Assembly (NCBI GenBank): GCA_965644265.1
Contig: OZ286461.1
Coordinates: forward strand, 76,012,001-76,076,000
DNA from: Glycera tridactyla
Lineage: Eukaryota
Reading direction: 5' to 3'
Length of the DNA: 64,000 nt
The notes beneath the pieces were generated by a model that made no database searches, was not told where the DNA came from, and worked only from the letters and a program-made list of their open reading frames with translations. Below are positions 936 to 44,178 of this stretch, piece by piece. Both the position numbers and the translations under genes were made by a program. Positions within the stretch are counted from its first letter, which is position 1. The number at the start of each line of letters is the position of its first letter.

Positions 936-1109
936 GTGCAGCAAAAGTACGGACATCATACTAGGCTTATATCATACAGCGCGGACATCATGGGAAACTT
1001 GTACAAGTATTCAACTTGTCACAAATGACGAAGGAGTTGATGAACTAGCCCAGCAATTTTCTGAGATTGTACGAGTAGTCATTGGCATACGGACTCATCA
1101 CTTCTCACA
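936..1109 (+). CDS. STAT: STAT-like exon (end of coiled-coil domain)
   Basis: tgtag|G TGC..TCA CA|gtaag; CSKSTDIILGLYHTARTSWETCTSIQLVTNDEGVDELAQQFSEIVRVVIGIRTHHFS; phase 2/2. Confidence 0.75.
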
Positions 1110-4100
1110 GTAAGATGTATGGTTGAACCCGTCTACAAACACCGCCCCAAGATTTGATTTGTTAAAATGTTTCACTGAAATAATTTTTATCTTACCTCAA
1201 CAAAGTTTTTTTTTTGGGGGGGGGGGGGGGGGTACTGTGGTTGTCCTGGCATCTGCATGTCTCCTATTGTCTTGGGGCAACCATCCTTAATTTCAAGGTG
1301 ATTGGATGCATAAACAGGGTGTCCACCCATCAGGGGAAAGTCAGGGGTATTCCAGACAGGACAAAAGTCAGGGAAATTCATGTGATTGTCAGGGAAAATT
1401 GGAATTTTGGGAAATGTCGGGGAATTTCATTTCAAATGTCAGGGAATTAGTGGATTTCATCTTCTAATATGAAGAAATGATATCGGTTCTCGACTGAGAG
1501 CCCACCACTCTGGTAGAATTTTCATTAGTGGCAGAAATTGGCAGAAATTGGTCGCAAGTTGACAATTGATCATCGGTTGGGCACATGGAATAAGAATGTG
1601 GATCTTATATATCTCTTACAAGTGACCACCTGTGTCAAAGGATCACTTAGATCTCAATGATCAGTGCTCAAGTTTTCTCAGATTAACATACCATCCTTTT
1701 ATTCTTCAAGCATATTGAACAAAATTGAAACAATTACCTGTGCGCTCTGTAGAGTAGCAGTCAGTTCACAACTAAAAGCAGCATTGCAAACCATAAATCC
1801 ATCACACAAATATTTTAGAATGAAAGGTTGCCATAATGCGCACAGAATATTTTGACAATCTGTTACTGATCCCATATTTTACAAATTTTCACCAAATTTG
1901 TGATCACTGTGAGTCACCATTGCAGTCTACATTGACTTCTGTGAAACTTTGCCAAGTGTTGGATCTTTCACAAACTGCTCATTGACTGCTAACATGACGC
2001 GAGAAATGAATATATCATGCCATCTAGGCAAAACATGGTTGCTGTACAGATCTATTTATTGTTTAGATTTTTCTTATTACCAAATCTGGCAAGTAAGCAC
2101 ATGGTTTGGCACAGCAACTAATTGACTTTTGACTACATTTGATCATCATTCCACCATTACTTATCATTCTTGTCATAACCTCATCTCAACAAATTTGAGG
2201 AGGGGTATGTTGAAGTCTCTTTACTCAGCAACTAGGGGCCTTGCCACATGAAACTTGGCCTGTGTATGCTTCAATACATTTGTTAACCCCACATGTTTTG
2301 CTTGATGAATTTGAGGTTGAAAATAGACCTTTTTTTTTCAAAGTGATGCTAGCTATATTTAGTGATCCAAGTGAGTCATGTTCAGTTTGGATTCAGTACA
2401 TGATAGGTATCTTTATCCCTCAAGATTGTATTCTACCCATGAGAGACTGATATTTTGGAATAAAATGTTTTTTTTAATGACTTAACTTTGACAGTTCTGG
2501 CAAGCTTTCAATACTGAGTTATACCAGAATTGATGGAAGATGTATTTCATAACATCCCCATCAGACCCATTGAACTTACACTATGTGCTTTAAGAATGTG
2601 AGTCACATTTCATCTTGTCAGGGGAATCATATATTTGTTCAGGTAATTGTCAGGGAATTTGGTCATGGTTCATGGTCACCCTGATAAAGGTCTAACTAGC
2701 TTTTTTGTATGCATTTTTGAAGCCCCTTCAAGTTTCAGGCTTGCCAAACAATGACTGCCAAAGGTAAAAAGCATTCTATTTGACACCTCTGTGACTTGCG
2801 CAGGTTACTGATGCAATAGGCATACATGTATTATGCCCACTTGCAGTGCTCTTGTTCATGAAATTGTTTTTTCTCTTGTAGATGCCTTGTCATAGACAAC
2901 CACCCTGCGCTCATTCACAAGGTAGAGGAGAAGAAGAAAGGGGCATTGTCAAGATCACTCGATGTTGGAATCAGGTGAGTGGGTATAAGAGAAATCCTTC
3001 CTAATTGAAGTTCTGATACATTCTGCTGAAAAAATGATGATGTGAATTTATATTGCACATTTGTTGCCTGGGGCTTGAGGCCCTCTCACAGTATTATGTA
3101 CTGAGAGAAATAGCAACACATGGAATCAATAAGACAGAAATGCAATAGCGAATATGTTTGTATGAACATTTTTCTGGGACTCGTAAAAGGTGCCTCTGAG
3201 CGCAGCGTGAGTAGATATCAGGAAGGGATCCATGAATTCCAGGAGGATGCTTAGAATTATTGTCTGTGTTTGTGTGGGCAGGTTGATTTTGAATTCACCA
3301 GCCTGATGGACAAGTGGAAATAATAAATGCAATAGGCATATAATGCAGGCAAGGTGAATTTTGAAGGGGCAGGTTGCACTATGAGCATGCTAATATTGCT
3401 GGTTCTGCATTAAAAGAAGTAGTGTCCATGCTATACATCAAGTCAGTTCTCAAAGAGAGAGAGAGAGTGGTGTAATGACAGTGTGCCTGGGTTCTGGGTG
3501 GTTACTGGTGCAGTTTATTTCATCTTTCAGTGCTCTTGGTTCGGCAAAACTGTTTAGTGCTTCCGAACTCCCTCTCAAGATTGGAGGCAAGCCTGAACTA
3601 TATGCCATAGACGACTTACGGAAATCCAAAGGGGAGTTCACTTGTAGGATGGAAAGTATGACCTACAAAACGGGCAGGCGAGACTGGTTGAGTGGGTCAG
3701 GTACAATGATCCTGGCTAGATATGACAAAGCTCACAAAGTCCAGGATAAATTGATGACAGACAACAGATATATTGCCAGATTCTCGATCATTGCTCCAAT
3801 CAACGGGAATCAAGTTGAAGTTCAGGTAAATCTTTCCATTTTGGAGTCTGCGCCAACATATAGAAGGATTTTTCATGTATGTGACTGTATTTTCTCATCT
3901 CCCTTTCTTCTCCCCATCCTTCCCTAAATAGCAAACCAAACCTCCATTGCATTCTCTTCTAGGGCTGGGATGAAACACAATAGTCACAAAACAAAACATT
4001 TCTAGAAACACTCCTCATGGATAGATAACGAAACGAAACATTATTCGTCCCTCCTCAAGGAATCTAGCGCTGCAATCCTCCTCTGCGCTAACCACCCTTG

Positions 4101-7100
4101 GCTTTGCATTATGGGCACCTCTACTATCGAATTGACGCGCCCGCCAAAAGTTCATCAAAACACCCTCATTCGAGCTCTCCACCACAACCCAGTGGTTTCT
4201 TTCATGAACCGATGTTTTCTCGCATCATATTAATGGCCGATTGAGTTATATTCGCCGAATAAATGTCGAATAGGGATGCAATGCACAATTTATCAGCGCG
4301 GCTTCTGGCGGGAAACACCCTCATTTGCATAGATTATATCAAATACAAGCTATTTTTAGATCGCACCATGACGGTATCCCGATACCAAATTTCCAACAGC
4401 CCTGGTCTGGCTTACGATTTTTCCCTCTATATCATGTTTGAGCGCTCCGATCTCTCAGGGAATAAGGTATGTTGTCGGAGGAGACGAGATGCACATTGTC
4501 GGACAAAATAAATGTTTGCACCGTGATATTCGTGAGTTTATTGTCAAAATTAATCGCATTTGACTGCCATTTTCACTTGCATCGATCATATTTATTGGCA
4601 TTTGAGCATACTGAGCCATGTTTCATTGTATTTCAAAATCCTCCTTTTGGTTTCGAAACAATCGTTTCGCGTGTAAAATATCGGTATTATCGGAACTTCG
4701 GCGAATCGTCACACCCCTATTCTCTTCACGCTTTCCAAATGATATCCATCTGTGTAATCTTCCTAGAAAATCCCATGTTCACTAATGCAGATTGAATCAG
4801 CTGACTCAGGATACCATCAGGCAGTCATTTTGGGGATTTCTGGATAGGGAAGGGGGCTTTCGGACACTCACAGTGAACAGTCATGAAGTTTTATTCTTGG
4901 TCAGTAATTTTAGGCACTTTGTGTGATAGTCAGTGAATAGAAGGAGAAATCTGATCAGGTTTACCAAACTCGAGCATTGGCAGTCATCTCATGCAACATG
5001 ATCATAAAAATATGGGACCAGAATGAAAATATATTTCACAATACACCTTTGGAATGTACGAATAACTTTCAGAAATCATCTGATCTGTCTTGTGGATTTT
5101 GAACTGTATTTCCAGCATAGCAGGGAAGCGCCCAGCTTGTGTGGGAGCAAGCATTCTTTTGGCATGAGCTACTCAAACTGCCTGAAATAACAATGGCTGA
5201 ATAACCCAGTTAGGAACTCACACCATTCCCTACACAGTCCAGGGGTCGAGGAACTTGTTCTTTAATTGTGAGATAATCGGGAAGATTAACCCTGTTCACC
5301 TATACGATTGATGTGATTAGAAAAGAGTTAATGTCATCTGTTCTGAGATAGACTCTGCCCTCTCTACTTATAGGTCGAAACCCATCCTCTCATATTCGTG
5401 TCACATAATTCACAGAGGTGGCATGCCCTTGGACTTCATCTTTGGTCAGCTTGTATCGAATCAGAGGTAGGTCCAGATTACGCAGTTGTATACAGTTGAG
5501 CCTATATTAAGCAACCATTGTATTGAGCAGCCACCTGCTTTATTTTGCCATTTTATGTTGATTTTCCTCTTGAATAGTGATTGCTAAACTTTCCTTTCTT
5601 GAACAACCTGCTATCCGTTATCTTGAGCAGTCACTCACTCATAGTTGTCAGCTTATACAAGCTTGAATGTGTCTTGGAGCATATGTTCCTGGCCTGAAAC
5701 CAATCGCTGATAAATGAATTTAACCCTTCAAATGCACTAACTCAGAAAAAATGCTGCATGTATTTGTGGAGTCCTGCCAAATTTCTGACCGCCCAATATA
5801 TCATCTCTAGTGTATCTTTGCAGGAAGCGCCATGGTCTAGTATTGCCCATCTCATCAATCTTTACTGTAACCAGAAGACTAAAAAAAATCTGAGCACAGG
5901 CCATCTGGACTTTCTTCGAGGAAGACTTCAGATCACTGGTAAGTTGACCATGATTTACTACAGAAGTAATTCCACAGAGTTACTGTATGTCTAGAGCGGG
6001 CAATACTGCACTTTTGCTGACCTGAATGCCATGTATTAGGATGAGGGCTATCATGGATAGATATTTCTTCATTCAGTTTCTCCATGCATCATACAATGTA
6101 ATACATTTGCTCCATGAGAGCTTCTCCAGTTTGACGAAGTAAGACAAATAAACACAAAAATACATTAGGGCTATTCCATTAAAAAATATTGGGGGGGGGG
6201 AGAGGAAGGGAAAAATGTTGACCCTCACCCCGCCCCCGCTTCTGTCTTGAGCCTCCTACCCCCCACTTTTTCATCTCTCGAGCCTCCCACCACCCACTTT
6301 TTAATCTCTCAAGCCTCCTACCCCCCACTTTATCTCTTGAGCCTTCCACCCCCACTTTTTCATCTCTCTAACTTGAGCATGTTAATATCGCTGGTTCTGC
6401 ATAAATACCAGTGTAGATGTAGTTAGTTACTGAAACAACCACAGCACGAATGATGGCGCTTCTCACGCGAATTCCAGATTGCAGCGGCACTTGTCATCAG
6501 CGATAGTTCAGAAAACTATTGTTTCCCGTTCCAACCTGGCGGTTCGACCTGGAACCAGACTGCAGCGCCATCGCACCGTGACAGTCACTTTTGAAACTAT
6601 CAGATTGTCAACAACCAAAATGGCGGTGGCATGTGCGTTTTTTCGCTCGCCAACGAATAAAATGGTTTTCGCTTTTATATTGATGGTAAATACATGGATA
6701 TACAATAGATTGGCGTGAATCCTTGACTTGTACGGTCGGACCACCATCTGCAGCCTCGTGTACACCCGAACGTGTTTTGAAATCGTCCGGGACTATCGGA
6801 CATCAGATTTTTCGCAGTACCTAGCTCCAAGTAAAGAACGTCAGATTTCACACATTTTACCACCCGCTTTTGTGGTTTTTCCGTAACTTCTGGGTAAAAT
6901 ATTACTTTCTCTTCACTTTCACCCCGCTTTTGCGGAAATTCTCTCTGACCCCCGCTTTTTCACGATTTTCCCTAATGTCGCCCACCCCCGCTTTTGCATT
7001 TATGGTACCCCATCCCACCCCTGCTTTTTTTCAACCCCATCCTGACTGCCCCCATTATATTTTTAAATGGAATAGCCCTTACTTAACGATCAATGATGTA

Positions 7101-10100
7101 TGATAATGTAACATTAGAAGTATTTCTGCCATGCCTCATGGGACTACAAATATGGATAATGAGATTTTGGTATATCAATAGTAAAAGTCCAACATTGACA
7201 ATGAATTACATTTCAATTTATGATATTTGAAGATGTTAGTTAGTGACTGAATGGATGAGCATTACCACAAGTACCCCACACAGTTCCAAAAGTGTCATAT
7301 TATGAATGTGATTGAATTAATCACATTAAATGCAAATGCAAAAGCTTTTCTCGAAATAATTTATTTTCACAATGTTAAAAATTAGTGTTCTAGCCCCTCG
7401 ATATCAAAAGAATGATGGTTATTAACATAATATTACAGTGTTTTTGAAACCTTTGTTTGAAGCAATATTCTGGTGGTAACTTTCAGAAAAATATTCCATA
7501 TTTTCTCCTAATATAGATTTTCTTTTCAATGATCAATATAAATGAACTTTTTTCTCTTATTGCAGACAACAGCACGTTAGTGAAGAAAGATGACTTCCTT
7601 AAGGTAAGAGATCACGTATATGTGAGAATACCATTGCATGGGTTGAGTTTTACAAATTAGTGGTTGGCTTATTTAGTACAATGCCTTTAGCTATCTTTGG
7701 TTGATGTCTTATCTGATAATTATGAGACTGACTGAATACTGTGAATACAGATATGTGTGATTGTCCTAAATGTGACCAAAAAGAGATGGTTTGTTGGGAT
7801 TATATTTGACTGTCGAGTAAATAAAGCAGCTCAGTGGAAGCATCAGAAGTGATCCATTGTTGGGGGGGGGGGGGGGGGTTCACTCTATATGTAGATTCAT
7901 TCTTGCAACAGCAAAGTCACACTATCCAGTAGGCAGGTGTAGTTTTTACAATAAATGTATTCACTGTGGAGTGTGGAATTCCTACGAAAATGAGTATGTC
8001 ATTGCTGCAATGATGCTGGCCAGCGCTCATCATATGGAGAAAATTCTTCATTTCTCTTCAACAAATTTGGCCGCAATTACTCCTATTGCAGTAGAACATA
8101 GCAAACAAATTTGCCCAGTATATACCTACCTATGAGAAAGATATGCCATCTCTCAAATGAAAGGTTATGAAGGAAACCGGACAACCATTATATCACACCC
8201 ATTTGATAGCTGTCTTGGATGTCATAGGAAAAAAGTGAAGGTCATATTCATTTGCTGATAGGTTTATACCACGAATAAAAAATGCAGTGATCATGTAAGG
8301 ACTTGCACACCAGTGTCATAGTTATCAGAGAAGAGCTTTCACAGTGGATGCGTGACTTCTGATTATGATGTGGATCACTATTGATGTAAAAAAACATAGA
8401 CAATGGGAGAGTGAAGAATGTGGTCCCCTCTTTTAATGTTTCTGTACATAGTGACTGATTCCAATGGAATCATTGTTTGAATTTCGCCTCAGTGATGATC
8501 CTGAAAACAGTGGTCACACAAAAAGTGGAAGCGACTGTATGCATCAGAATGAGATCACATGACCAAAATGGCGTTGTCCTTTCAGAAACATCTACCAAGG
8601 ACAAATTTCTCTCTGTGGCGATGGATCTGGTGTTGCTTCAATTCTCTGAGTAAGAATGAGCTTAGTCAAGACTGGAAACAAGAGTAAGTTGCGTATGGTA
8701 TTGTGAGAGGATAGGGCTATCGAAAAATCAGTTGAAATGCAGTGCCGAGGAGGGGGAGGGAAGACGAACAATGTGCACCCATGGATACAGTGATATCACA
8801 GTATTATGTAGAATACTTATTCTGCATTTACTCCAATACAAAGACTGTATGTGAATATATCTACCCATTCTTTCTGTAATCGTAGTGATTCATGTTTAGC
8901 TAGGGGTTGACACTCCATAGAAATCTTCATTTCCTATGAGAGCCTATTTTGTGGCAAGGCATCTGCGTGAACCAAAGTTTCACCGGTGTTCGGGTGAAAA
9001 TTTGGCGTTCACATTTGTCTTGTGAGAGAAGTACAAGTCCTATTGAGAATCCATGGATACCTTCTTATCTGCAATGGAGTTGTGCATAAACATGGCTAGA
9101 TTGACTAATTTATCTTTCGGATTGGCTGCATACTCGATGTCTGGCCTTGATAGGCTTTCTCCATGTATTTCCCCTTTGCGCATGAGCTCCATAACTTCCT
9201 TGCGGTACGTCACTTCCAGTGATCTACATGTATTTATTGCTGGTTGCGAACCTGGAAGAAGGATTCGGTCAATGTTCACTGATTAAACTGATGTTTTGAA
9301 TAAATGGGGATTGTCATCCACGAGTCGTCTGATCCATTGTATAGTGCAAGAATTTCCCTTTCTATTCGTGCAGTGGTCCTGGGCATGGCGATTCCTGTTT
9401 AAATCCCTACTGAATGCTAATCATGTATTCAATTTGGCGTTCACATTTGTCTTGTGAGAGAAGTGCAAGTCCTATTGAGAATCCATGGATACCTTCTTAT
9501 CTGCAATGGAGTTGTGCATAAACATGGCTAGATTGACTAATTTATCTTTCGGATTGGCTGCATACTCGATGTCTGGCCTTGATAGGCTTTCTCCATGTAT
9601 TTCCCCTTTGCGCATGAGCTCCATAACTTCCTTGCGGTACGTCACTTCCAGTGATCTACATGTATTTATTGCTGGTTGCGAACCTGGAAGAAGGATTCGG
9701 TCAATGTTTCACTGATTAAACTGATGTTTTGAATAAATGGGGATTGTCATCCACGAGTCGTCTGATCCATTGTATAGTGCAAGAATTTCCCTTTCTATTC
9801 GTGCAGTGGTCCTGGGCATGGCGATTCTTGTTTAAATCCCTACTGAATGCTAATCATGTATTCAGTCTTCCAAGTTCTCATGAGCCTGGTTGATTTGGGG
9901 GACAAAAATACTTCTTTGAAAATGTGAATAATTATTTTATAGAATTATCTAATGAATGCCAGATGTGTATAGGGTTTTTTAATTGGCATGTTCCTCTTGG
10001 ATATCAGCGCCAGGAAAGTTTGACTGTTTTGTAACACTTCCAATCCAATTTGCAGTGTTATCCATGGATTCATCTCTCATGATGAGGCAGACACGCTTCT

Positions 10101-13100
10101 GCGGAACACACCTCTTGGAACGTTTTTAGTCAGATTCCGAGAAACCAAACTGGATACATCTCAGAGCACTGAGCAAGGCTGCAACCTCTGTGTCTGTATC
10201 TCAACAAGGGATGGTGCTGGTGGTAAGTAGATGATTGATGACGAGGCCACAGCTTTGCTGAATTCTTTTTCTGGCAGGCAATAATACAATTTATTTTAGT
10301 GATTTTGATACTTCACTCATCACTTGTCCACTCGCCAAGACTAATCACAGGCGAGATTGATTGGCTTCTCTCCATGTTTGAAGTTTTGTTTCTCTTTGAT
10401 ATTTTCACCAGTATTCACAATTCGTCATGTCATGTCTGAGCTAAATTATGGGTCGACTTTTGTGCCAGATATCCTTATACACTGGGTTGACTTATATGGC
10501 AGTATATAGAGTATGTTTTGCAAATTGGAATCATTCATATTTTGTACAAGAAACCAGTGGGAAGAGTTCGAACAAATCAAAAATAAGCTTAGCATGGTCT
10601 AGTGACACTGGTGTGTTCTTTTTTAAGGTGCTGTGAAGCCACGACAGGCAACCTTGAATTATCAAGATTTGCAAAGTCGGCCACTCTCACAGTATTTGAA
10701 AAACCTTCAAGTCAATGATGATTTTGGGGAAACCTATTGCTTGACTCATCTGTATCCAGATAGACCCTTGCTGCAACTCTGTGAAGAGCTGGAGAACCAA
10801 GGTGAGTTATTTTTTTGGGTTCTTCATTTGCTTATCTTATGGCCTATTTTTGACAACATTCTTTGTTCTCAACCATGGTGCCAGTAGTGTTACATAGATG
10901 TCATCTGCTACGATTTCAGCGTAGCAGCTACAATTTTCGATGTCTCACTACGCTGCTGCGAATAGACCTCCAAAAGCTACGATTCTCACGAAAAGTGGTG
11001 AAAAAGTATGGAAAATGGTCCTAAAATCAACCCATGCATGCAAAAATCCAGCTTTCTCACAACTTTCGTCAGAAGTTGCCGCGAGAAACCGGGGATGTGA
11101 AGACCAGAAAGGGGCAGCAACATTAATCCAGCGTGTATCAGTGGAAACGATGCTCGATATAAACAGCTGGAATCAATTGCAAAACGAATATTTAATGACC
11201 CCCGACTGTGGCAAGAGACGCTAACGATTGTCCAATCAGGCTAGAACACCCTAAAAGAAAATCCTATCTTTTCAATGTTAAATTGGTCGAATTCCCTCCC
11301 CCAAAACCAGCATTCCAAAAGAAATTTGAGATGTCACCATACTGCCTTGCTATGGTACTGTTTTTCCTCTCTCTCCACTCAAAAAATCAGCATAGCATCA
11401 CCTGCTCGTTTTTGAGATAACTGGATTTGAAGTTAGGGTGTTGGGGATGTCTCTCACATACCCATGGAGGATACCCCTATGGGCCTGGTTACTCACAGGA
11501 GAGAACCTGCCCCATAGGCGTATGAATACATTCTCTCAATACATGTACAACAAATAAACATGTACTTCTATTTAAAATACAGAATGGGTTTCATTCCACA
11601 TAGTCATCAGAGTCATAGGGCTCTAATTGTGATTTCCCATTATAGTTCTTGGTCTACCAAGCACCTATTGGCCAATGGTAGTGCCGCCGTGACCTCTTTT
11701 AGGGTCATCTAGCCGGAAATGACACATTGAGAGTCCGCTTGTTCTGCCGAAAAACGACACTCAGAGATGTCGCAAAGATCAGAGCCATCAACTGAAGGCT
11801 AGGACACCCTTCAATGTTAAATTGGTCAAATTCCCTCCTCCAAAACCAGCATTCCAAAAGAAATTTGAGATATCTCCATACTGCCTCAAGTGCTATGGTA
11901 CTATGTTTCCTCTCTTTTCGCTCAAAAAATCAGAATAGCATCACCTGCTTGTTTTTGAGATAACTGGATTTGAAGTTAGGCTGTTGGGGATTTCGCGCAC
12001 GTGAGAACGAGGCTGATCGTACAGAAAACCTGGTTATTTTGGCCACGTGATCACCGGATCTCCGCAAGAACGCATGTGCTAGAGGTGGTCTCTACTGACT
12101 TCATCCAGGCTAGGTGTACGAGACTAGTCGACCATTGCCGATCAAAAATACGGAAATACCCGATCGTAACTCTATGACAGTGGACATTCACAAAGTTTGC
12201 CGAACATGCCCGATCACATTGGGAGGGAGAAATATCAGCATATTAAATCATTTCAACAGTGATTACATCATAATTGATGAATTATACATATAATCGGTTG
12301 CCCGCGAATGTCGATTTTGTCCTCACGGGCTTCGCTACTATTTTTCGATCTCAGAAGTTGGCGTCTATGGCATTAGGCATCAGACCTAATTCTGTAAATC
12401 AGTTGATCAAGATTTATTATCAAAGATAATTTCACAAATGGCTCGTGAACAATTATGACATAATGGTCACCTGGATCTGTAGGTGTCTCTGAGGGGAGTG
12501 GAGTGTGCTTCTAGTGAGCTTATTCAGCTGGTTTTTTAGAAATTCAAATTAACTTTTCTCACACTTGACATCCATATGTATGTACTATTGACACATGGAT
12601 GAAAACATTTCGTTGAGGCCTGCCCACACATCCCAAAAAAGATCACGGCATCGCAAAAACATTTCCCTGGCCCTTCACCATGAAATCTGCTGTGACCCAC
12701 AACTGCATGCATGTTGTTGATAAGACACTGGTGTGGCTGTTTTTAGATGGGTACAAAGAAGCCTCAGGTTACTATTATAGCATGAGTCGACCACCAATGT
12801 TGAATCTGAGGAAGGCTGGTGCAAGGTAAGTTGATATAACTTCAAACTAACATTTGTTCTGATATACAGATTAAAGTAAGTCTACCTCTGACATTTGAAA
12901 CATAATGAACACCATTGATCAATATGATACAAATATAGGATAATTGCAGAGGAGTGCAATGAAGTATGACTTCGATCAAATGTGACAATCTGTCATTTGC
13001 AAAATAATGCGTTTCGGCCATGTCTTTGCCATCAAAGATTGGTTGCTATCTTGCACACCGATTTGTATGGGGAGGGGGGGGAGGTAGTTCCTGCAGTCCT

Positions 13101-16100
13101 TCCGGCTTCTGCATCCGCAAGCTCCTTTGAGGTCATATGTAAGTCATGTGAAGGTCATGTTTAAGTCCCTTTGCTGAGCAATTAGAGCACCTAGCCCCAT
13201 GACATTTGGCCTGTATATGCTTCAATACATTCACTGATTTATCCAGTCATCATCACCGTTGTGTTCTGCTCGATCAATTTTGAGTTGAGATTTTTGTTGA
13301 TGGTGAAACTTTGCCTTCAGGGGCTATATCTGATGATCCTGTTGTTGGAGTTTGTAGCTCAGCAAATATGGCCCCTATCACCATCAGATTTCATGCACAC
13401 ATGGTGGAAGGGTGTTCACCTATTGATTTAGCAGTATCCCAGTTTTATTCCATGATTTTGGGGAGAAAATGCATATTTTTGATAAGATGTTTTTGTTTAA
13501 AGTCAGGTAACTAAGCAACCTCCACCCCCCAGCACCACCAGATATCATACACTCACGCTTCAGTGTATTAGCGAGAGCGTTCACCCATCAGTGCAGCAAT
13601 ATCTCAGTTTTTGGTTGGGATTTTTGAGTGAAATTGCTTCTTTCTGAGAAAATGAACTTTCCGCCAGAGTTTTGGTTGAAGTCAGGATACTCTACAACCA
13701 TGACCCCTACCTCTGCCAGATGATAAATAGACATGTTCCAATGAATTCTGAAGGGTGCCCTCCCTTCCAGGGCTCTACATGGACTATTTTCAGCTGTCCT
13801 CAGGGCAGTTGCAGTAGGATATTTACCTGCTCTCCCTGCCATTTTTACCTGCCCTACTACATTGTCATAGACTGAATAATGCTTAGGTACCTGTCTATAG
13901 GACAGGCAGACCAATAAAACCACCTGCTCTAACAATAAATCTGCCAGCCTGTGCCATTACGGCAACCATTAGCGTAGAGCTCTGCAGCATCGTAGTTTTG
14001 CAAAAATGATTTTTTGGTAGAAATGGAACTAGAGGTCTCTGACAAGATACCAGCTTTTTTATTTGATATGTCTGATGAGAGACCACCTCCTTTGAGGGAC
14101 CACTTCTCGGTGGTATTTTGGCAGTCTTTCATTGCAGGTTTCACTGCATCAATATGATCTTGGATTAGGGATTTTGTACTTGACAAGATCGCCACAGAGA
14201 TTTCATTTGGGCCCATGAATTCTGTGTTGGTCCTACTCCAAAGATATTTGTGGTACCCATCACATACATTTCTCTTGCCATGATGTGTTCATGATTACAG
14301 GACATCGAGTACAATCCCTGCACATGTGGCCAGTGCTGATCTTGTAGCAGCATTATCACCAGCTAGGTTAGTGCACTCATTTGCATTTATTTTGGTCAGG
14401 TGGCAATGGACAGTTGCTGACTGTATTACAAACCCTGCGCATAGATGGTCAACTCCCCATATTTCCCATTGAACAGCTTCATAGACAGATCCATGTGGGA
14501 CTGCACTAAATGCCCTATTCAATGTGTACAGGACAGATGTGCTTTCTTTGCACCCTGGAACTGTCAGCTACTTTACCTTGACGACCTTTGTTGTTCCCAA
14601 TCATCTTGTGTCCAGATTTTGTTGGAGTGATGCCTGTAGTTTACGTAGCATTCAGTTTTCTTAGACGAGGAGTATGAGGCATGCATAATCATTTGTGTTG
14701 ATACATGGTCTCATATTTATATTTTCATCGATTTCAGCAGCAGTAATTTCGATGGCAGCTCTATGGCCTCCTCGCCCATGTCTCAGAATACACTTTCTCC
14801 ACCTCATGGATCCCGTTTGTAAGTACTTTCTTCTTTAATTGTCCAATGCCATGGACGTGGCAAGGGACTATTGAAATGCCCTCCATCCATTCGTCTGTCC
14901 ATCCGCCCGTCCTCCACACATTGGTTTCCGACCATTATCTCTTGAACCGCTGATTGCAGAGCTTCCATATCGGAACTGGGAACTCATCCAAGGGACCTTC
15001 AGACCTGATTAGTATTCCACTGGACTTCAGTGATTTTCTGTCAAATGCTGGCCTCTGATTTGTTGATGGGTTTCCAAATGCTATCTCTTGAATCGCTGAT
15101 AGAAAAAAATTGTTAACCATATTCATCAGTTTCTATCTTTGTCACAAGGAAGCATAAACTAATAATCGCCAAAAGTAGGCCGAATAGACAGTTGCATCTG
15201 TATAACTACACTATTTTACTTTGACAAGTCATATGATTGAATTCCCCGGCGTCCAGTTATATGGTATTGATGCATGAATCTCAAAAATCCATCAAATATT
15301 CTCCAGAAACAGTCGAATTATTGAGCGGTATGTTCATCCATGTGTCCTGCCATGTTAGACCTGGCTTGCTTGCTGACAAGGCAAGAGCAAAAAATTCGGA
15401 CATCTTGGGCTATCAAAGCCAGGCGGCAACTTCTCTCTCCCTAGGGGGGAGGGGGGGGGGATTCCTAATGAGGGTCAGGGCGCTTGTGACCCTAAGTTAA
15501 GGGCCAAGATCACATGTGTTTTTCAGATTTTCACATTTTGCACAATAACTCAAGCCAGCATTGCTCAGCCAACCAAACAACTCAATGAATTTTCCCTGTA
15601 TGGGTGACTCACTGGGCTCCCATCACAGACTCCTGCATATTCAATCTGTGAAAAAGAATTTCAACGTATTTCGTTATGCCCCACAGTTTGTAACACCGGA
15701 GGGGCATTGTGTTTTCGAATTGACCCCAGTGTGGGTGGATTTGTGGGTGGCTGGAGGAAGGTTTCTAGACAATAAGTCAGAAAGTTTCAGGGCTAACCTT
15801 CTCAAACTTGGTGTACACACTTTCCTAGGCTATGGCAAGACACCTATCGATTCTGGGGAAATCATCTTGAATTTCAAGGTCTTTGACTGCAAAAAGGTCA
15901 AAGTGCTTCCTGGACAATAACTTCAAAAGTTTCAGGGCAAGCCTTCTCGGACTTGGTATACAGACTGCTAGGCTGTGGCAGGACACCTAGTGATTTTGGG
16001 GCGGCCATCTTGAATTTCAAGGTCACTGAATGCAAAAAGGTCAAAAAAATTCCCAGACAATAATTTCAAAAGTTTCAGGGCTAGCCTTCTCGAACTTGGT

Positions 16101-17332
16101 GTACAGACTCTCCTAGATTTTCACGGTTATTTCAGTGTGGAATTGTATCAGTAGTATTCATATATTTCACTTTTTTCATTCACCCTTCCTGTTACAAGCA
16201 TGCACTCAGCAGGGCATTCACACTCACTGAGTGCATCCAGTTATTATATGTGAGGTCATGTATCCTGAATAATTGGTGTCACTGATGCTGTGGGATGTGG
16301 AGGTTTGATGGAGAAAAATCCACTACAGTCGGTTTGCTTTTTTTGTGGCACCTGTGTTTTGCTGCTTTGAAATCTGCATCCTAGTGTGAAGTATCAATGT
16401 CACTACTTACAATGGATATTTTCCCTTATATATCTTTCTCAAATGTCACCCATTCTGTCTGCGAGTGAAATCCTCTGCACAAGATGCAAAAATTACGATG
16501 TCATAATGCGATCCCAAAGTCAGAACAATGCACTTATCTACTATCCGGGCTTAATTCATATGTTTCTCTTCGGGATTTTCAGGTATTTCTGTTGGATTCT
16601 TATTAGGTCTTACAAATGATGTTTCACAAACAAATATCAGCATTGGAGAATGATCGGTGAAAACAGGCGCCGCAAAAAAAGGCAAACCAACTGTAGGTCA
16701 CTGATATGTACATGAGTGACCTGTTTTTATATCCAGGCAATATCTGTGTGCTAATTCATGTAACTGTTTGCAGTGATAGCCGATTCAGTTCTCTTGATGA
16801 GTCACTTGAATGTATCTCAAATGATGGTCAGACACTGACTGCCGAGTCACCAAGTCAAAATGGAGTGGCTTCTGAAATCGTCGTGGGAGAATGGGATCAA
16901 TTCAGAGATGAACTGACCCAAACTGTGGTAGACTTGTTGGCGAATCCTGTTGTGGGACAAGATGTAGGGTAAGTGTGTGCGCACGCATGCGTGCGTGTCA
17001 GTCACAGTGTGGGGGCTGTGGTCGGGAGTGACTGTGGGTGCATGTTCATGGGTGTACATGTGGGCGTACATATAGTAATAGGTCGAAACACATTTCCATG
17101 CAGCTATGCAAAGTAGTCTTCATCAAGTTCACATCAGCGAATTGCTCCACCATCCTGTTGAATAGATAGACATCCATTATGAGATATTCATAATTTTAAG
17201 CCAATCATGATGTGCTGCTTCAGTCCTGATTTTGGAAAGCACATCTCATAGTACACTAATGGCTGATTATATGTTTGTTTTTCTCTTCCATGCAGTTTTG
17301 GAGATAGTTTCTGTGATACTGCCGTTGAATGA
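936..17332 (+). CDS. STAT: Divergent STAT-family transcription factor, 5'-partial, 12 exons: join(936-1109,2882-2974,3531-3825,5374-5466,5824-5938,7566-7603,8586-8683,10056-10222,10628-10801,12747-12825,16774-16968,17296-17332)
   Basis: All introns are GT-AG and phases agree across the 11 junctions with no internal stop. Motifs appear in STAT order: CLVIDNHP (cf. TFIIEKQP), MTDNRYIARFS..NGNQVEVQ (cf. VTEEKFTILF..GGNELVFQV), VETHPLIFVSHNSQ..LW (cf. TLSLPVVVIVHGSQ..LW), APWSSIAHLIN..NLSTGHLDFL (linker), HLPRTNFSLWRW (cf. NLPGWNYTFWQW), DWKQDVIHGFIS..TPLGTFLVRF (SH2), LTHLYPDRP, then DGY. Alignment was by eye against remembered STAT5/STAT3 motifs. Confidence 0.88.
1315..2683. mobile_element. hAT-like TIR element with GTCAGGGAA subterminal repeats and apparent 5-bp TSD ATAAA
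   Basis: ataaa|CAGGGTGTCCAC ... ATGGTCACCCTG|ataaa; gtcaggg(a/g)aa arrays at 1340-1445 and 2616-2658. Confidence 0.7.
2882..2974 (+). CDS. STAT: STAT-like exon (start of DNA-binding domain)
   Basis: ctcttgtag|A TGC..ATC AG|gtgagt; CLVIDNHPALIHKVEEKKKGALSRSLDVGI. Confidence 0.85.
3531..3825 (+). CDS. STAT: STAT-like exon (DNA-binding domain core)
   Basis: atctttcag|T GCT..GTT CAG|gtaaat; lies in ORF 3475-3927; ...GTMILARYDKAHKVQDKLMTDNRYIARFSIIAPINGNQVEVQ. Confidence 0.88.
5374..5466 (+). CDS. STAT: STAT-like exon (end of DNA-binding domain)
   Basis: acttatag|GTC..GAG|gtaggt; VETHPLIFVSHNSQRWHALGLHLWSACIESE; phase 0/0. Confidence 0.85.
5824..5938 (+). CDS. STAT: STAT-like exon (linker domain)
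   Basis: tttgcag|GAA..ACT G|gtaagt; EAPWSSIAHLINLYCNQKTKKNLSTGHLDFLRGRLQIT. Confidence 0.85.
6168..7078. mobile_element. Harbinger/Tourist-like MITE with TTA TSD
   Basis: tta|GGGCTATTCCATTAAAAAATAT ... ATATTTTTAAATGGAATAGCCC|tta; 3-bp TWA TSD is the PIF/Harbinger signature. Confidence 0.8.
7566..7603 (+). CDS. STAT: STAT-like small exon (linker)
   Basis: ttattgcag|AC..AAG|gtaaga; (D)NSTLVKKDDFLK; only this frame is open. Confidence 0.8.
8586..8683 (+). CDS. STAT: STAT-like exon (linker end / SH2 start)
   Basis: cctttcag|AAA..CAA GA|gtaagt; KHLPRTNFSLWRWIWCCFNSLSKNELSQDWKQ. Confidence 0.85.
8999..9863. repeat. Near-perfect tandem duplication (432 + 433 bp) of a probable L1/Tx1-like LINE fragment inside a STAT intron
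   Basis: Units 8999-9430 and 9431-9863 differ at only about 3 positions seen; duplicated ORFs 9053 and 9485; the - strand reads QWIRRLVDDNPH. Confidence 0.85.
10056..10222 (+). CDS. STAT: STAT-like exon (SH2 domain core)
   Basis: tttgcag|T GTT..GGT G|gtaagt; VIHGFISHDEADTLLRNTPLGTFLVRFRETKLDTSQSTEQGCNLCVCISTRDGAG. Confidence 0.9.
10628..10801 (+). CDS. STAT: STAT-like exon (SH2 C-terminal part)
   Basis: ttttaag|GT GCT..CAA G|gtgagt; AVKPRQATLNYQDLQSRPLSQYLKNLQVNDDFGETYCLTHLYPDRPLLQLCEELENQ. Confidence 0.87.
10893..12369. mobile_element. TIR element of the same family with degenerate 6-bp TSD; contains an internal ~190-bp direct repeat (about 11255-11450 and 11810-11990)
   Basis: gtgtta|CATAGATGTCATC ... 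GTTGGCGTCTATG|gcatta. Confidence 0.6.
12747..12825 (+). CDS. STAT: STAT-like exon carrying the putative activating tyrosine (DGY)
   Basis: tttttag|AT GGG TAC..GCA AG|gtaagt; (D)GYKEASGYYYSMSRPPMLNLRKAGA. Confidence 0.82.
14835..16242. mobile_element. Helentron/DINE-like composite non-autonomous element with ~145-bp internal tandem repeats (about 15767-16120)
   Basis: 5' hairpin TGCCA-tggacg-TGGCA followed by a (ccat/ccgt)-like simple repeat; about 2.4 copies of the gacaataa..aaagtttcagggc..gaatttcaaggtc..aaaaaggtcaaa unit; 3' hairpin CACTCA-c-TGAGTG then ccagtt. Confidence 0.55.
16774..16968 (+). CDS. STAT: STAT-like exon (acidic C-terminal tail)
   Basis: tttgcag|T GAT..GTA GG|gtaagt; DSRFSSLDESLECISNDGQTLTAESPSQNGVASEIVVGEWDQFRDELTQTVVDLLANPVVGQDV; phase fits the previous exon. 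Confidence 0.72.
17296..17332 (+). CDS. STAT: Probable last coding exon of the STAT-like gene
   Basis: Strong polypyrimidine acceptor gtttgtttttctcttccatgcag|T TTT GGA..GAA TGA; (G)FGDSFCDTAVE*. Confidence 0.55.
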
Positions 17333-42944: not shown

Positions 42945-44178
42945 CCATTTCTTCTTCTAGACAAGACAAAGTGTGGCTGCTTGACGCTTAAAAGTGTCAG
43001 GTGGAAGCCAAGTCACTTCCACTGGGATCATGTACCACAGACGGGCAGCTGCTGGGGAGAAGCTATGCTGGTAGATCTGAGAGCGGGCGTAAGGGATGAT
43101 AAATCGCCAGGCATCTTCCGGACCGATGTTTCTGTTCGACTGTTGGAGGTATTGATGAATGTTAAGCTCAACAATACTGTGGGTGATCTTGTAGAGCATG
43201 ATGGCTCTTGCTTGTCGACGTTGCTGCTCTAGTGACTGCCAGTTGAGGTGTGTCAGCATGTCGGTAACATTACTCATTCGGTTGAAGACTGACATCACGT
43301 ATCTTGCTGCTTTCCGCTGCACACTCTCAATCTTGTTGACGTTTCGTTGTGTGTGTGGTGACCATACTGTCGCAGCATATTCTACTGTAGGGCGGACCAA
43401 CATCTTATAGGCCTCCACTTTTACCTGTCGGGTGCAACACTGTGTGTTCCGCTGAAGCATTATGCGAGTGGTGTTGGCTTTGGCTGTGATCTTATCTACA
43501 TGCGCATTGAAGTTCAGCTTCTTGTCGATCTCCAGCCCGAGGTACTTGGAAGATTCCACAAGTGCTAGTTGGTGCCCATGGATAAAGTATTTCGCTTCTA
43601 CTGGCTTCTTCTCGAGAGTAATGCACAGGATTTCACATTTATCGGGGTTGAATTGCATTTGCCAGGTGTGTTCCCACTGTTGGATGCGATCTAGATCTTC
43701 TCGTAGGGCCATGGCATCCGCATTGCATGTAATCTCACAATATAGTAGTGAGTCGTCGGCATACAGTCGAGTATTTGAGGTGATGTTGTCATTGATGTCG
43801 TTGATGTAACACAGGAACAACAACGGCCCTAGAACCATTCCCCGAGGTACACCACTTCTCAACGGCGATTCCTGGGACTTCTTTCCCTCACAAACCACTC
43901 TCTGCCTACGGTTTCTCAGGAAGCATTCAATCCACACGCATGTGGTGCCTCCGATGCCATAGTACCTCAGTTTCTGCAGTAGACGACTATGCGGCACCTA
44001 GTCGGCAACTTCAAGAAATCTAGTAGTATGGCATCAATCTGGCTCTTGTCTTCTACTGCTCTCACGAAGTCCTGAATTGTTGCAATCAGTTGTGTCTCCG
44101 TGGATCGGCGCTTCCTGAAGCCATGCTGTGCATTGTTTAAGATGTCACAGGACTCTAGAACATCTGTTTTCAGAAACA
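42945..44178 (-). mobile_element. 5'-truncated CR1-type LINE (reverse transcriptase and C-terminus)
   Basis: QHGFRKRRSTETQL..LDF / PHSRLLQKLRYYGI..SGVPRGMVLGPLLFLCYINDI..RLYADD..WQMQFNPDKC..KYLG..RPTVEYA..IESVQRKAAR; one frameshift near 44010; short (AAG)n tail after the stop. Confidence 0.93.

Follow-up and report, generated by a model that had tools for sequence, protein, structure and literature searches.

A transcribed, highly divergent STAT-family gene of Glycera tridactyla with substituted residues in the SH2 phosphotyrosine pocket

We have analysed a 64,000-nucleotide stretch of the Glycera tridactyla genome (hereafter the window; assembly GCA_965644265.1, contig OZ286461.1, positions 76,012,001 to 76,076,000 of the forward strand), and all positions below are counted from its first letter. 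On the plus strand, an intact and transcribed gene of the STAT family is represented between 936 and 17332 by its 3' two thirds. The encoded protein is a highly divergent member of the family, and its SH2 domain has His and Arg at the positions of K591 and S611 of human STAT3, two residues of the phosphotyrosine pocket. Judged from its sequence, the protein probably still works like a STAT, with a remodelled working pocket.

STAT activation depends on one contact, in which the SH2 pocket grips a phosphotyrosine. A single substitution in STAT3, at K591 or at S611, is enough to cause human disease; in the STAT of the window both positions are altered, whereas the central Arg and the tyrosines of the tail have been kept. 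Being a natural and expressed STAT with a double change, it offers a ready test of how much of the pocket is needed, and it illustrates the shifting of charges in SH2 pockets.

A STAT-family gene divided among short exons

The window is intron- and repeat-rich eukaryotic DNA with about 41% G+C and two N gaps. A profile built from 25 STATs was run on every stop-to-stop piece of both strands. Its five best matches in the 64 kb all fell on the plus strand within 5.4 kb (5386-10767) and were colinear with the profile, in the order DNA-binding domain end, two pieces of linker, two of SH2. Near 57.5 kb, the minus strand gave a weak match to "GFISH", which was discarded as a chance hit (E 8-15, no adjoining matches).

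The exon chain was built from splice-site and phase analysis around the profile matches, together with the limits given in the original prediction, which had proposed 12 phase-consistent exons encoding a complete STAT architecture. The chain and its limits (936-17332) were recovered: the exons are phase-consistent, all inferred introns are of the GT..AG type, and the frame ends at a TGA at 17330-17332. Our reconstruction of the predicted model also had 12 exons, but the transcripts revealed one more (14301-14366), bringing the count to 13. Spliced from the window coordinates, this portion of the gene comprises 540 open codons. They encode the coiled-coil end and a DNA-binding domain recognised by alignment, followed by linker, SH2 domain, Tyr-rich DGY segment and, in predicted exons, the acidic tail. 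The architecture is thus present from the coiled-coil end onward, the N-terminal third being located upstream of the window.

The joined model matched the 25-STAT profile as one continuous domain with 121 bits (profile positions 272-690), including the DNA-binding domain at positions 324-474, and scored 131 bits against a profile of the unnamed divergent STAT clade described below. With tblastn it gave one local alignment (E 4e-24, 26% identity) covering the DNA-binding domain from its start and reaching into the SH2 domain of a gene on the metagenomic contig L003, whose product carries Pfam STAT_bind and STAT_linker. The homology was unbroken across the junctions of 2974 with 3531 and of 3825 with 5374, and the exons concerned are therefore supported.

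In the exon-by-exon search of Pfam, the SH2 exon (10057-10221) passed the SH2 model with 27.6 bits (cut-off 21). Exon 5 reached 17.5 bits against STAT_linker, under the cut-off of 27, because the linker domain is divided among three exons; STAT_bind gave no match to any single exon, and a motif search of the window for DNA-binding-domain signatures yielded nothing useful. Two characters of STATs were found. A linker lies directly before the SH2 domain, as seen in the matches of our own STAT profiles at 5821-5928 and 8583-8681 and in the continuous alignment of the joined model, and the SH2 domain carries the invariant beta-B5 arginine. The profile matches, the L003 alignment and the Pfam SH2 match agree with the predicted family assignment.

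Lacking a start codon, the SH2 exon does not appear in a list of open reading frames (ORFs) with a 40-amino-acid cut-off, as the prediction had stated. This STAT gene was missed by ORF-based annotation, a signalling gene concealed in short exons.

Transcript evidence came from four public runs of one study that contain part of the SH2 region, whose contigs were aligned to window positions 7400-13399. The runs themselves are presumed to be RNA, but spliced contigs arise only from RNA. In each of the four, one contig (1841-4481 nucleotides) skipped precisely the predicted introns, with GT..AG ends. Four joints were carried directly by the contigs in all runs (7603 to 8586, 8683 to 10056, 10222 to 10628 and 10801 to 12747), and two more were seen through loose contig ends. 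The 30 letters before 7565 were identical to window 5908-5937, giving the joint of 5938 with 7566 and hence the micro-exon 7566-7603. The letters behind 12826 corresponded to 14302-14331 with one synonymous mismatch, giving the joint of 12825 with 14301 and hence the additional 66-nucleotide exon 14301-14366. The contigs bore out the predicted splicing in this part of the gene.

The 4481-nucleotide contig (run X4) extended 1747 nucleotides 5' of position 8584, of which the window exons account for 808, leaving about 940 nucleotides of transcript 5' of the portion explained by the window; it also ran 2213 nucleotides 3' of 12826. Since this contig reaches past the window-explained sequence, the N-terminal domain and, for the most part, the coiled coil would be encoded upstream of the window, and the 3' part of the transcript is longer than the portion covered here. 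Transcripts and genome differed at about 1% of positions; three out of four of the located differences were synonymous, and one out of four changed Thr to Ile in the BC-loop insert. An open frame, canonical splicing and transcription are found together here, as in a functional gene.

The phosphotyrosine pocket and its relatives

The two pocket motifs named in the prediction, GFISH and FLVRFRET, are encoded on the plus strand at 10066-10080 and 10123-10146, respectively. The SH2 exon matched residues 459-488 of the STAT3 chain 1bg1_A without gaps; we converted this index to STAT3 numbering on the assumption that the construct begins at residue 127. The His codon at 10078-10080 then falls at K591, the Arg at 10132-10134 at R609, the Arg at 10138-10140 at S611, and the Glu-Thr pair at 10141-10146 at E612 and S613. 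The invariant Arg and Glu are thus kept, as had been predicted, and the usual STAT signature of FLLRFS with a helix-A (alpha-A2) Lys or Arg is replaced by FLVRFR with His.

STAT3 contacts pY705 through K591, R609, S611 and S613 (PMC6032208), and the beta-B5 Arg is the principal phosphate partner (PMC6895964; PMC7530234). According to a review (PMC6895964), FLLRFS occurs in all STATs, and among 121 human SH2 domains alpha-A2 is Arg or Lys in 118 and beta-B7 is Ser in 106.

To find relatives, the SH2 exon was compared exhaustively by HMMER with 1.84 billion sequences that represent about 15 billion predicted proteins. Neither the product of the gene itself nor an orthologue was found there, and the 31 weak matches below E 0.001 were mostly non-STAT SH2 proteins. 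One match, P0030, was a STAT fragment, and word searches from P0030 and P0032 assembled about 45 STATs, including vertebrate STAT1-6, canonical STATs of mollusc, spider and tunicate origin, and the unnamed divergent clade. The window protein had at most 23% identity to any STAT gathered, in line with the predicted high divergence. Throughout this set the helix-A position was always Lys or Arg and the S611 position always Ser, with the exception of the Tara Oceans fragment P0013, which has Arg and Lys, respectively.

P0013 (locus L001) is known from one exon, an SH2 core exon whose acceptor and donor positions are those of the window exon and whose sequence is 48-51% identical to it. Such shared exon borders indicate the same gene lineage in another organism. 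P0013 keeps the helix-A Arg where the window gene has His, and a word search from P0013 found only P0013 itself. As this fragment has Lys at the S611 position, the basic residue there is no one-off: a basic beta-B7 residue is rare, yet not confined to the genome of the window.

Maximum-likelihood analysis of 29 STATs joined the window protein to nine proteins of the unnamed divergent clade (96 ultrafast bootstrap, 92 SH-aLRT), with the "STAT6-like" protein of Mercenaria and every canonical STAT outside this group. At 3.96 changes per site, the terminal branch of the window protein is far longer than the median (0.42), so that the placement carries a long-branch caveat. The placement is backed by two shared features. 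The window gene and the clade have a BC-loop insert of equal length, which follows RFxE, is about nine residues long and contains SQ (NIENSQKSDISG in the clade, KLDTSQSTEQGC in the window), and in both the SH2 domain, ending with LYPD, is closely followed by a DGYK that takes the form DGYKRGKY in the clade. Moreover, the SH2 exon scored 40.5 bits against the clade profile across its entire length, and the SGYY of exon 10 matches L003. The protein is related to this unnamed divergent animal STAT clade and has itself evolved very fast. Of the lineage-specific paralogue that had been proposed, the separation from canonical STATs stands; the lineage specificity has to be qualified, given the grouping with a wider clade and the basic residue of P0013 at the S611 position.

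The clade is made up of sequences that JGI, Logan and ENA list, unannotated, as "hypothetical protein" (P0032/P0076, P0059-P0065, P0072 and P0079). Its members have the domain order of the window gene and are 50-74% identical to one another over linker and SH2, but at most 23% to the window protein; they also keep GFISK and FLLRFSE(S/T) where the latter has GFISH and FLVRFRET. In P0065, the region from the DNA-binding domain to the SH2 domain is a single 560-codon ORF, whereas the window gene distributes it over many short exons; the family is therefore intron-poor in that organism. The ORF lies in an ENA long-read metagenome assembly (L002/L003, 8200-14300), where an ORF with STAT_int precedes it by 1.5 kb.

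The canonical STAT5/6-type proteins (Pomacea P0037, Nucella P0066, Argiope P0048, vertebrate STAT5A/B and STAT6) likewise have a DNA-binding domain, a linker and an SH2 domain followed by a tyrosine, and share with the window gene PVVVIVH-like, FxFWxW-like, GTFLxRF and LYPD motifs. Unlike it, they lack the BC-loop insert, have FLLRFS and the helix-A Lys, and are separated from it in the tree. The Mercenaria mercenaria "STAT6-like" protein P0052, a divergent mollusc STAT from the same searches, has a related BC-loop insert (NITDSQGVKS) but keeps GFVSK and FLLRFSD and falls on the canonical side of the 96/92 branch.

These comparisons bear on whether the gene could be an ordinary invertebrate STAT orthologue, with His and Arg being common at the two pocket positions. 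Protist STAT-type SH2 domains do vary at helix A, and P0014 and P0025 have His there. However, Lys or Arg together with Ser was found in all canonical STATs gathered (Pomacea, Nucella, Argiope, Clavelina and vertebrate STAT1-6), and the tree separates the window protein from them with 96/92. We regard this explanation as highly improbable.

Function of the altered pocket

The reading that we favour is that of a protein still working through phosphotyrosine, a view based on its retention of the principal Arg, the Glu, the Thr, the rest of the SH2 domain and the tyrosine segment. A tyrosine in DGYKEASGYYYS, 11-19 residues past LYPDRP, would be phosphorylated; the SH2 domain of a partner would bind it, and the dimer would then bind DNA. 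The tyrosines after the SH2 domain stand in motifs conserved with the relatives (DGYK, SGYY). The pocket would keep the Arg of the R609 position with Glu and Thr, while the helix-A Lys has given way to His and the Ser to Arg. Because the new residue at the S611 position is basic, the positive charge seems to have been moved rather than lost; it may be relocated inside a pocket that would not be dead.

Several points weigh against this interpretation. STAT3 K591E/M and S611G/N/I are human loss-of-function alleles (PMC6895964), and changes at both positions could abolish phosphotyrosine binding. The very long branch could also mean relaxed constraint. One of the three transcript-genome differences in the SH2 exon has no position assigned and could touch a pocket codon. 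Finally, the first five exons, the tail exons and the N-terminal third are predicted and lie outside the RNA-aligned 7400-13399, the donor of exon 5 excepted.

The first two of these points would also fit an SH2 domain that no longer binds phosphotyrosine, the protein then acting in a phospho-independent manner, for example as unphosphorylated STATs do, or by serving the canonical STAT as decoy or dominant-negative partner. Phospho-independent activity was the second option of the original prediction, after an altered phosphopeptide specificity. Two phosphate-contacting positions are altered together, to His from Lys/Arg and to Arg from Ser; single changes at both positions inactivate human STAT3 (PMC6895964), and the branch is extremely long. 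Nevertheless, the beta-B5 Arg, the BC-loop Glu and Thr, LYPDRP and the conserved DGYK/SGYY tyrosine segment are all retained. The replacing residue is basic and should attract phosphate rather than repel it, and the C-terminal SH2 domain of p120RasGAP binds phosphotyrosine despite rearranged basic residues (PMC7530234). The human alleles, found in autosomal dominant hyper-IgE syndrome (PMC6895964), affect the same two positions as the window gene, but each of them causes disease by the loss of one residue to an acidic, neutral or small one, whereas the window gene combines His and Arg in a natural expressed gene. We consider a loss of binding unlikely, although it deserves to be taken seriously.

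The pocket may also have been rebuilt. The window STAT, and perhaps a small marine lineage including the Tara Oceans fragment, may have lost the helix-A Lys and gained the beta-B7 Arg in favour of a different ligand preference, which we put forward as a rather doubtful conjecture. If true, the phosphotyrosine could be bound in another geometry, the pocket could recognise an acidic motif or one more phosphate, or the His could make binding pH-sensitive, and this would be a natural case of rewiring the most conserved part of STAT signalling.

The odd residues could, on the other hand, reflect drift in an expressed but decaying paralogue, a pseudogene in the making. Consistent with this are the very long branch and the identity of at most 23%, the DNA-binding domain that Pfam did not recognise exon by exon, and the lack of a close orthologue among the 1.84 billion representative proteins. 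Against it, the frame is open through 13 exons with canonical splice sites throughout, spliced contigs occur in four runs, and three out of four located transcript-genome differences are synonymous; STAT motifs are also kept throughout the protein, and exon borders are common with a distant relative. Decay of a redundant paralogue is hence less likely, and we rate it as improbable. A functional STAT with a remodelled pocket remains our preferred reading.

Exons of the gene and repeats of the window

All exons are on the plus strand. Exon 1 (936-1109, predicted; acceptor ttgtag before an exonic G, donor gtaaga, phase fitting exon 2) encodes the end of the coiled coil and gave only a weak alignment with the STAT profile (positions 272-317). 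Exon 2 (2882-2974, predicted), with strong splice sites and a consistent phase, encodes the start of the DNA-binding domain (CLVIDNHPALIHKV) and aligns with the same region of the STAT_bind-positive relative in L003. The core of this domain occupies the 98 codons of exon 3 (3531-3825, predicted; acceptor ctttcag, donor gtaaat, consistent phase), which lies within the single tblastn alignment to L003 (E 4e-24).

Exon 4 (5374-5466) encodes the end of the DNA-binding domain with a PLIFVSHNSQ motif and is placed by a profile match (5386-5454) and splice sites. Its donor, set by splice signals and phase, is uncertain (5466, 5484 or 5487, each of phase 0). With 5466 joined to 5824, the window protein is about eight residues shorter than its relatives, and the weaker in-phase donors 5484 and 5487 would fill most of that gap, hence the uncertainty.

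The linker begins in exon 5 (5824-5938), which has a profile match and the STAT_linker score of 17.5 bits, and whose donor was confirmed by the loose contig end. It continues in exon 6, the 38-nucleotide micro-exon (7566-7603) joined to 8586 in all four runs and, by the loose end, to 5938. An alternative micro-exon at 7604-7659 had a slightly higher profile score but is ruled out by the RNA joint of 7603 with 8586. Exon 7 (8586-8683) completes the linker with an FSLWRWIW motif; the contig piece 8584-8683 showed zero differences and carried the joint of 8683 with 10056, and the exon scored 22.6 bits against the clade profile.

The core of the SH2 domain, with helix A, strand B, the BC-loop insert and strand C, is encoded by exon 8 (10056-10222), which has the Pfam SH2 match, is bounded by an acceptor AG at 10054-55 and a donor gtaagt at 10223, and is joined on both sides in four runs. 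The intron before it contains a tandem duplication (8999-9864) with a unit of 432-433 nucleotides and 99-100% identity. In the RNA runs, contigs accumulate on this duplication to a mean word depth of up to 366, and their ends lie in unrelated sequence, which indicates an abundant dispersed or transcribed repeat outside the STAT mRNA.

Exon 9 (10628-10801) encodes the remaining SH2 domain up to the LYPDRP motif, with joints on both sides (10222 to 10628 and 10801 to 12747) in four runs and a profile match at 10663-10767. The following intron, between 10801 and 12747, holds a second repeat family (11238-11714 and 11891-12000), on which contigs 90-95% alike aligned at high depth; within it, 11348-11457 and 11891-12000 form a 110-nucleotide pair of 90% identity. 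No tRNA-derived element was found in the intron repeats.

The tyrosine segment DGYKEASGYYYS is encoded by exon 10 (12747-12825), covered by the contig piece 12745-12826 with its joint; the donor is AG/gtaagt, and an Asp codon is split by the intron. Exon 11 (14301-14366; 66 nucleotides, in frame) has the acceptor ttacag and the loose-end match, and its donor gttagt at 14367 was inferred only from phase. A direct splice from 12825 to 16774 would also be in frame, but the one contig followed beyond this point (run X4) goes first to 14301. A short contig piece at 13152-13185, seen in run X4 only, had loose ends on both sides and was unrelated to the STAT transcript.

The last two exons are predicted. 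Exon 12 (16774-16968; acceptor tttgcag, donor gtaagt, consistent phase) encodes an acidic, Ser-rich tail and found no homology support. Exon 13 (17296-17332; acceptor ccatgcag, consistent phase) adds the last 12 codons and the TGA. Should the intron between them stay unspliced, a TAA at 16970-16972 would end the protein. The last long intron of the predicted gene contains a tandem repeat at 15767-16110, with 2.4 copies of a 143-nucleotide unit and 82% matches.

Elsewhere in the window, a (CA)46 microsatellite occupies 56-147. On the minus strand, a 345-codon ORF at 42957-43994 encodes the C-terminal part of a reverse transcriptase (Pfam RVT_1, E 5.6e-16) and is probably a retroelement remnant.

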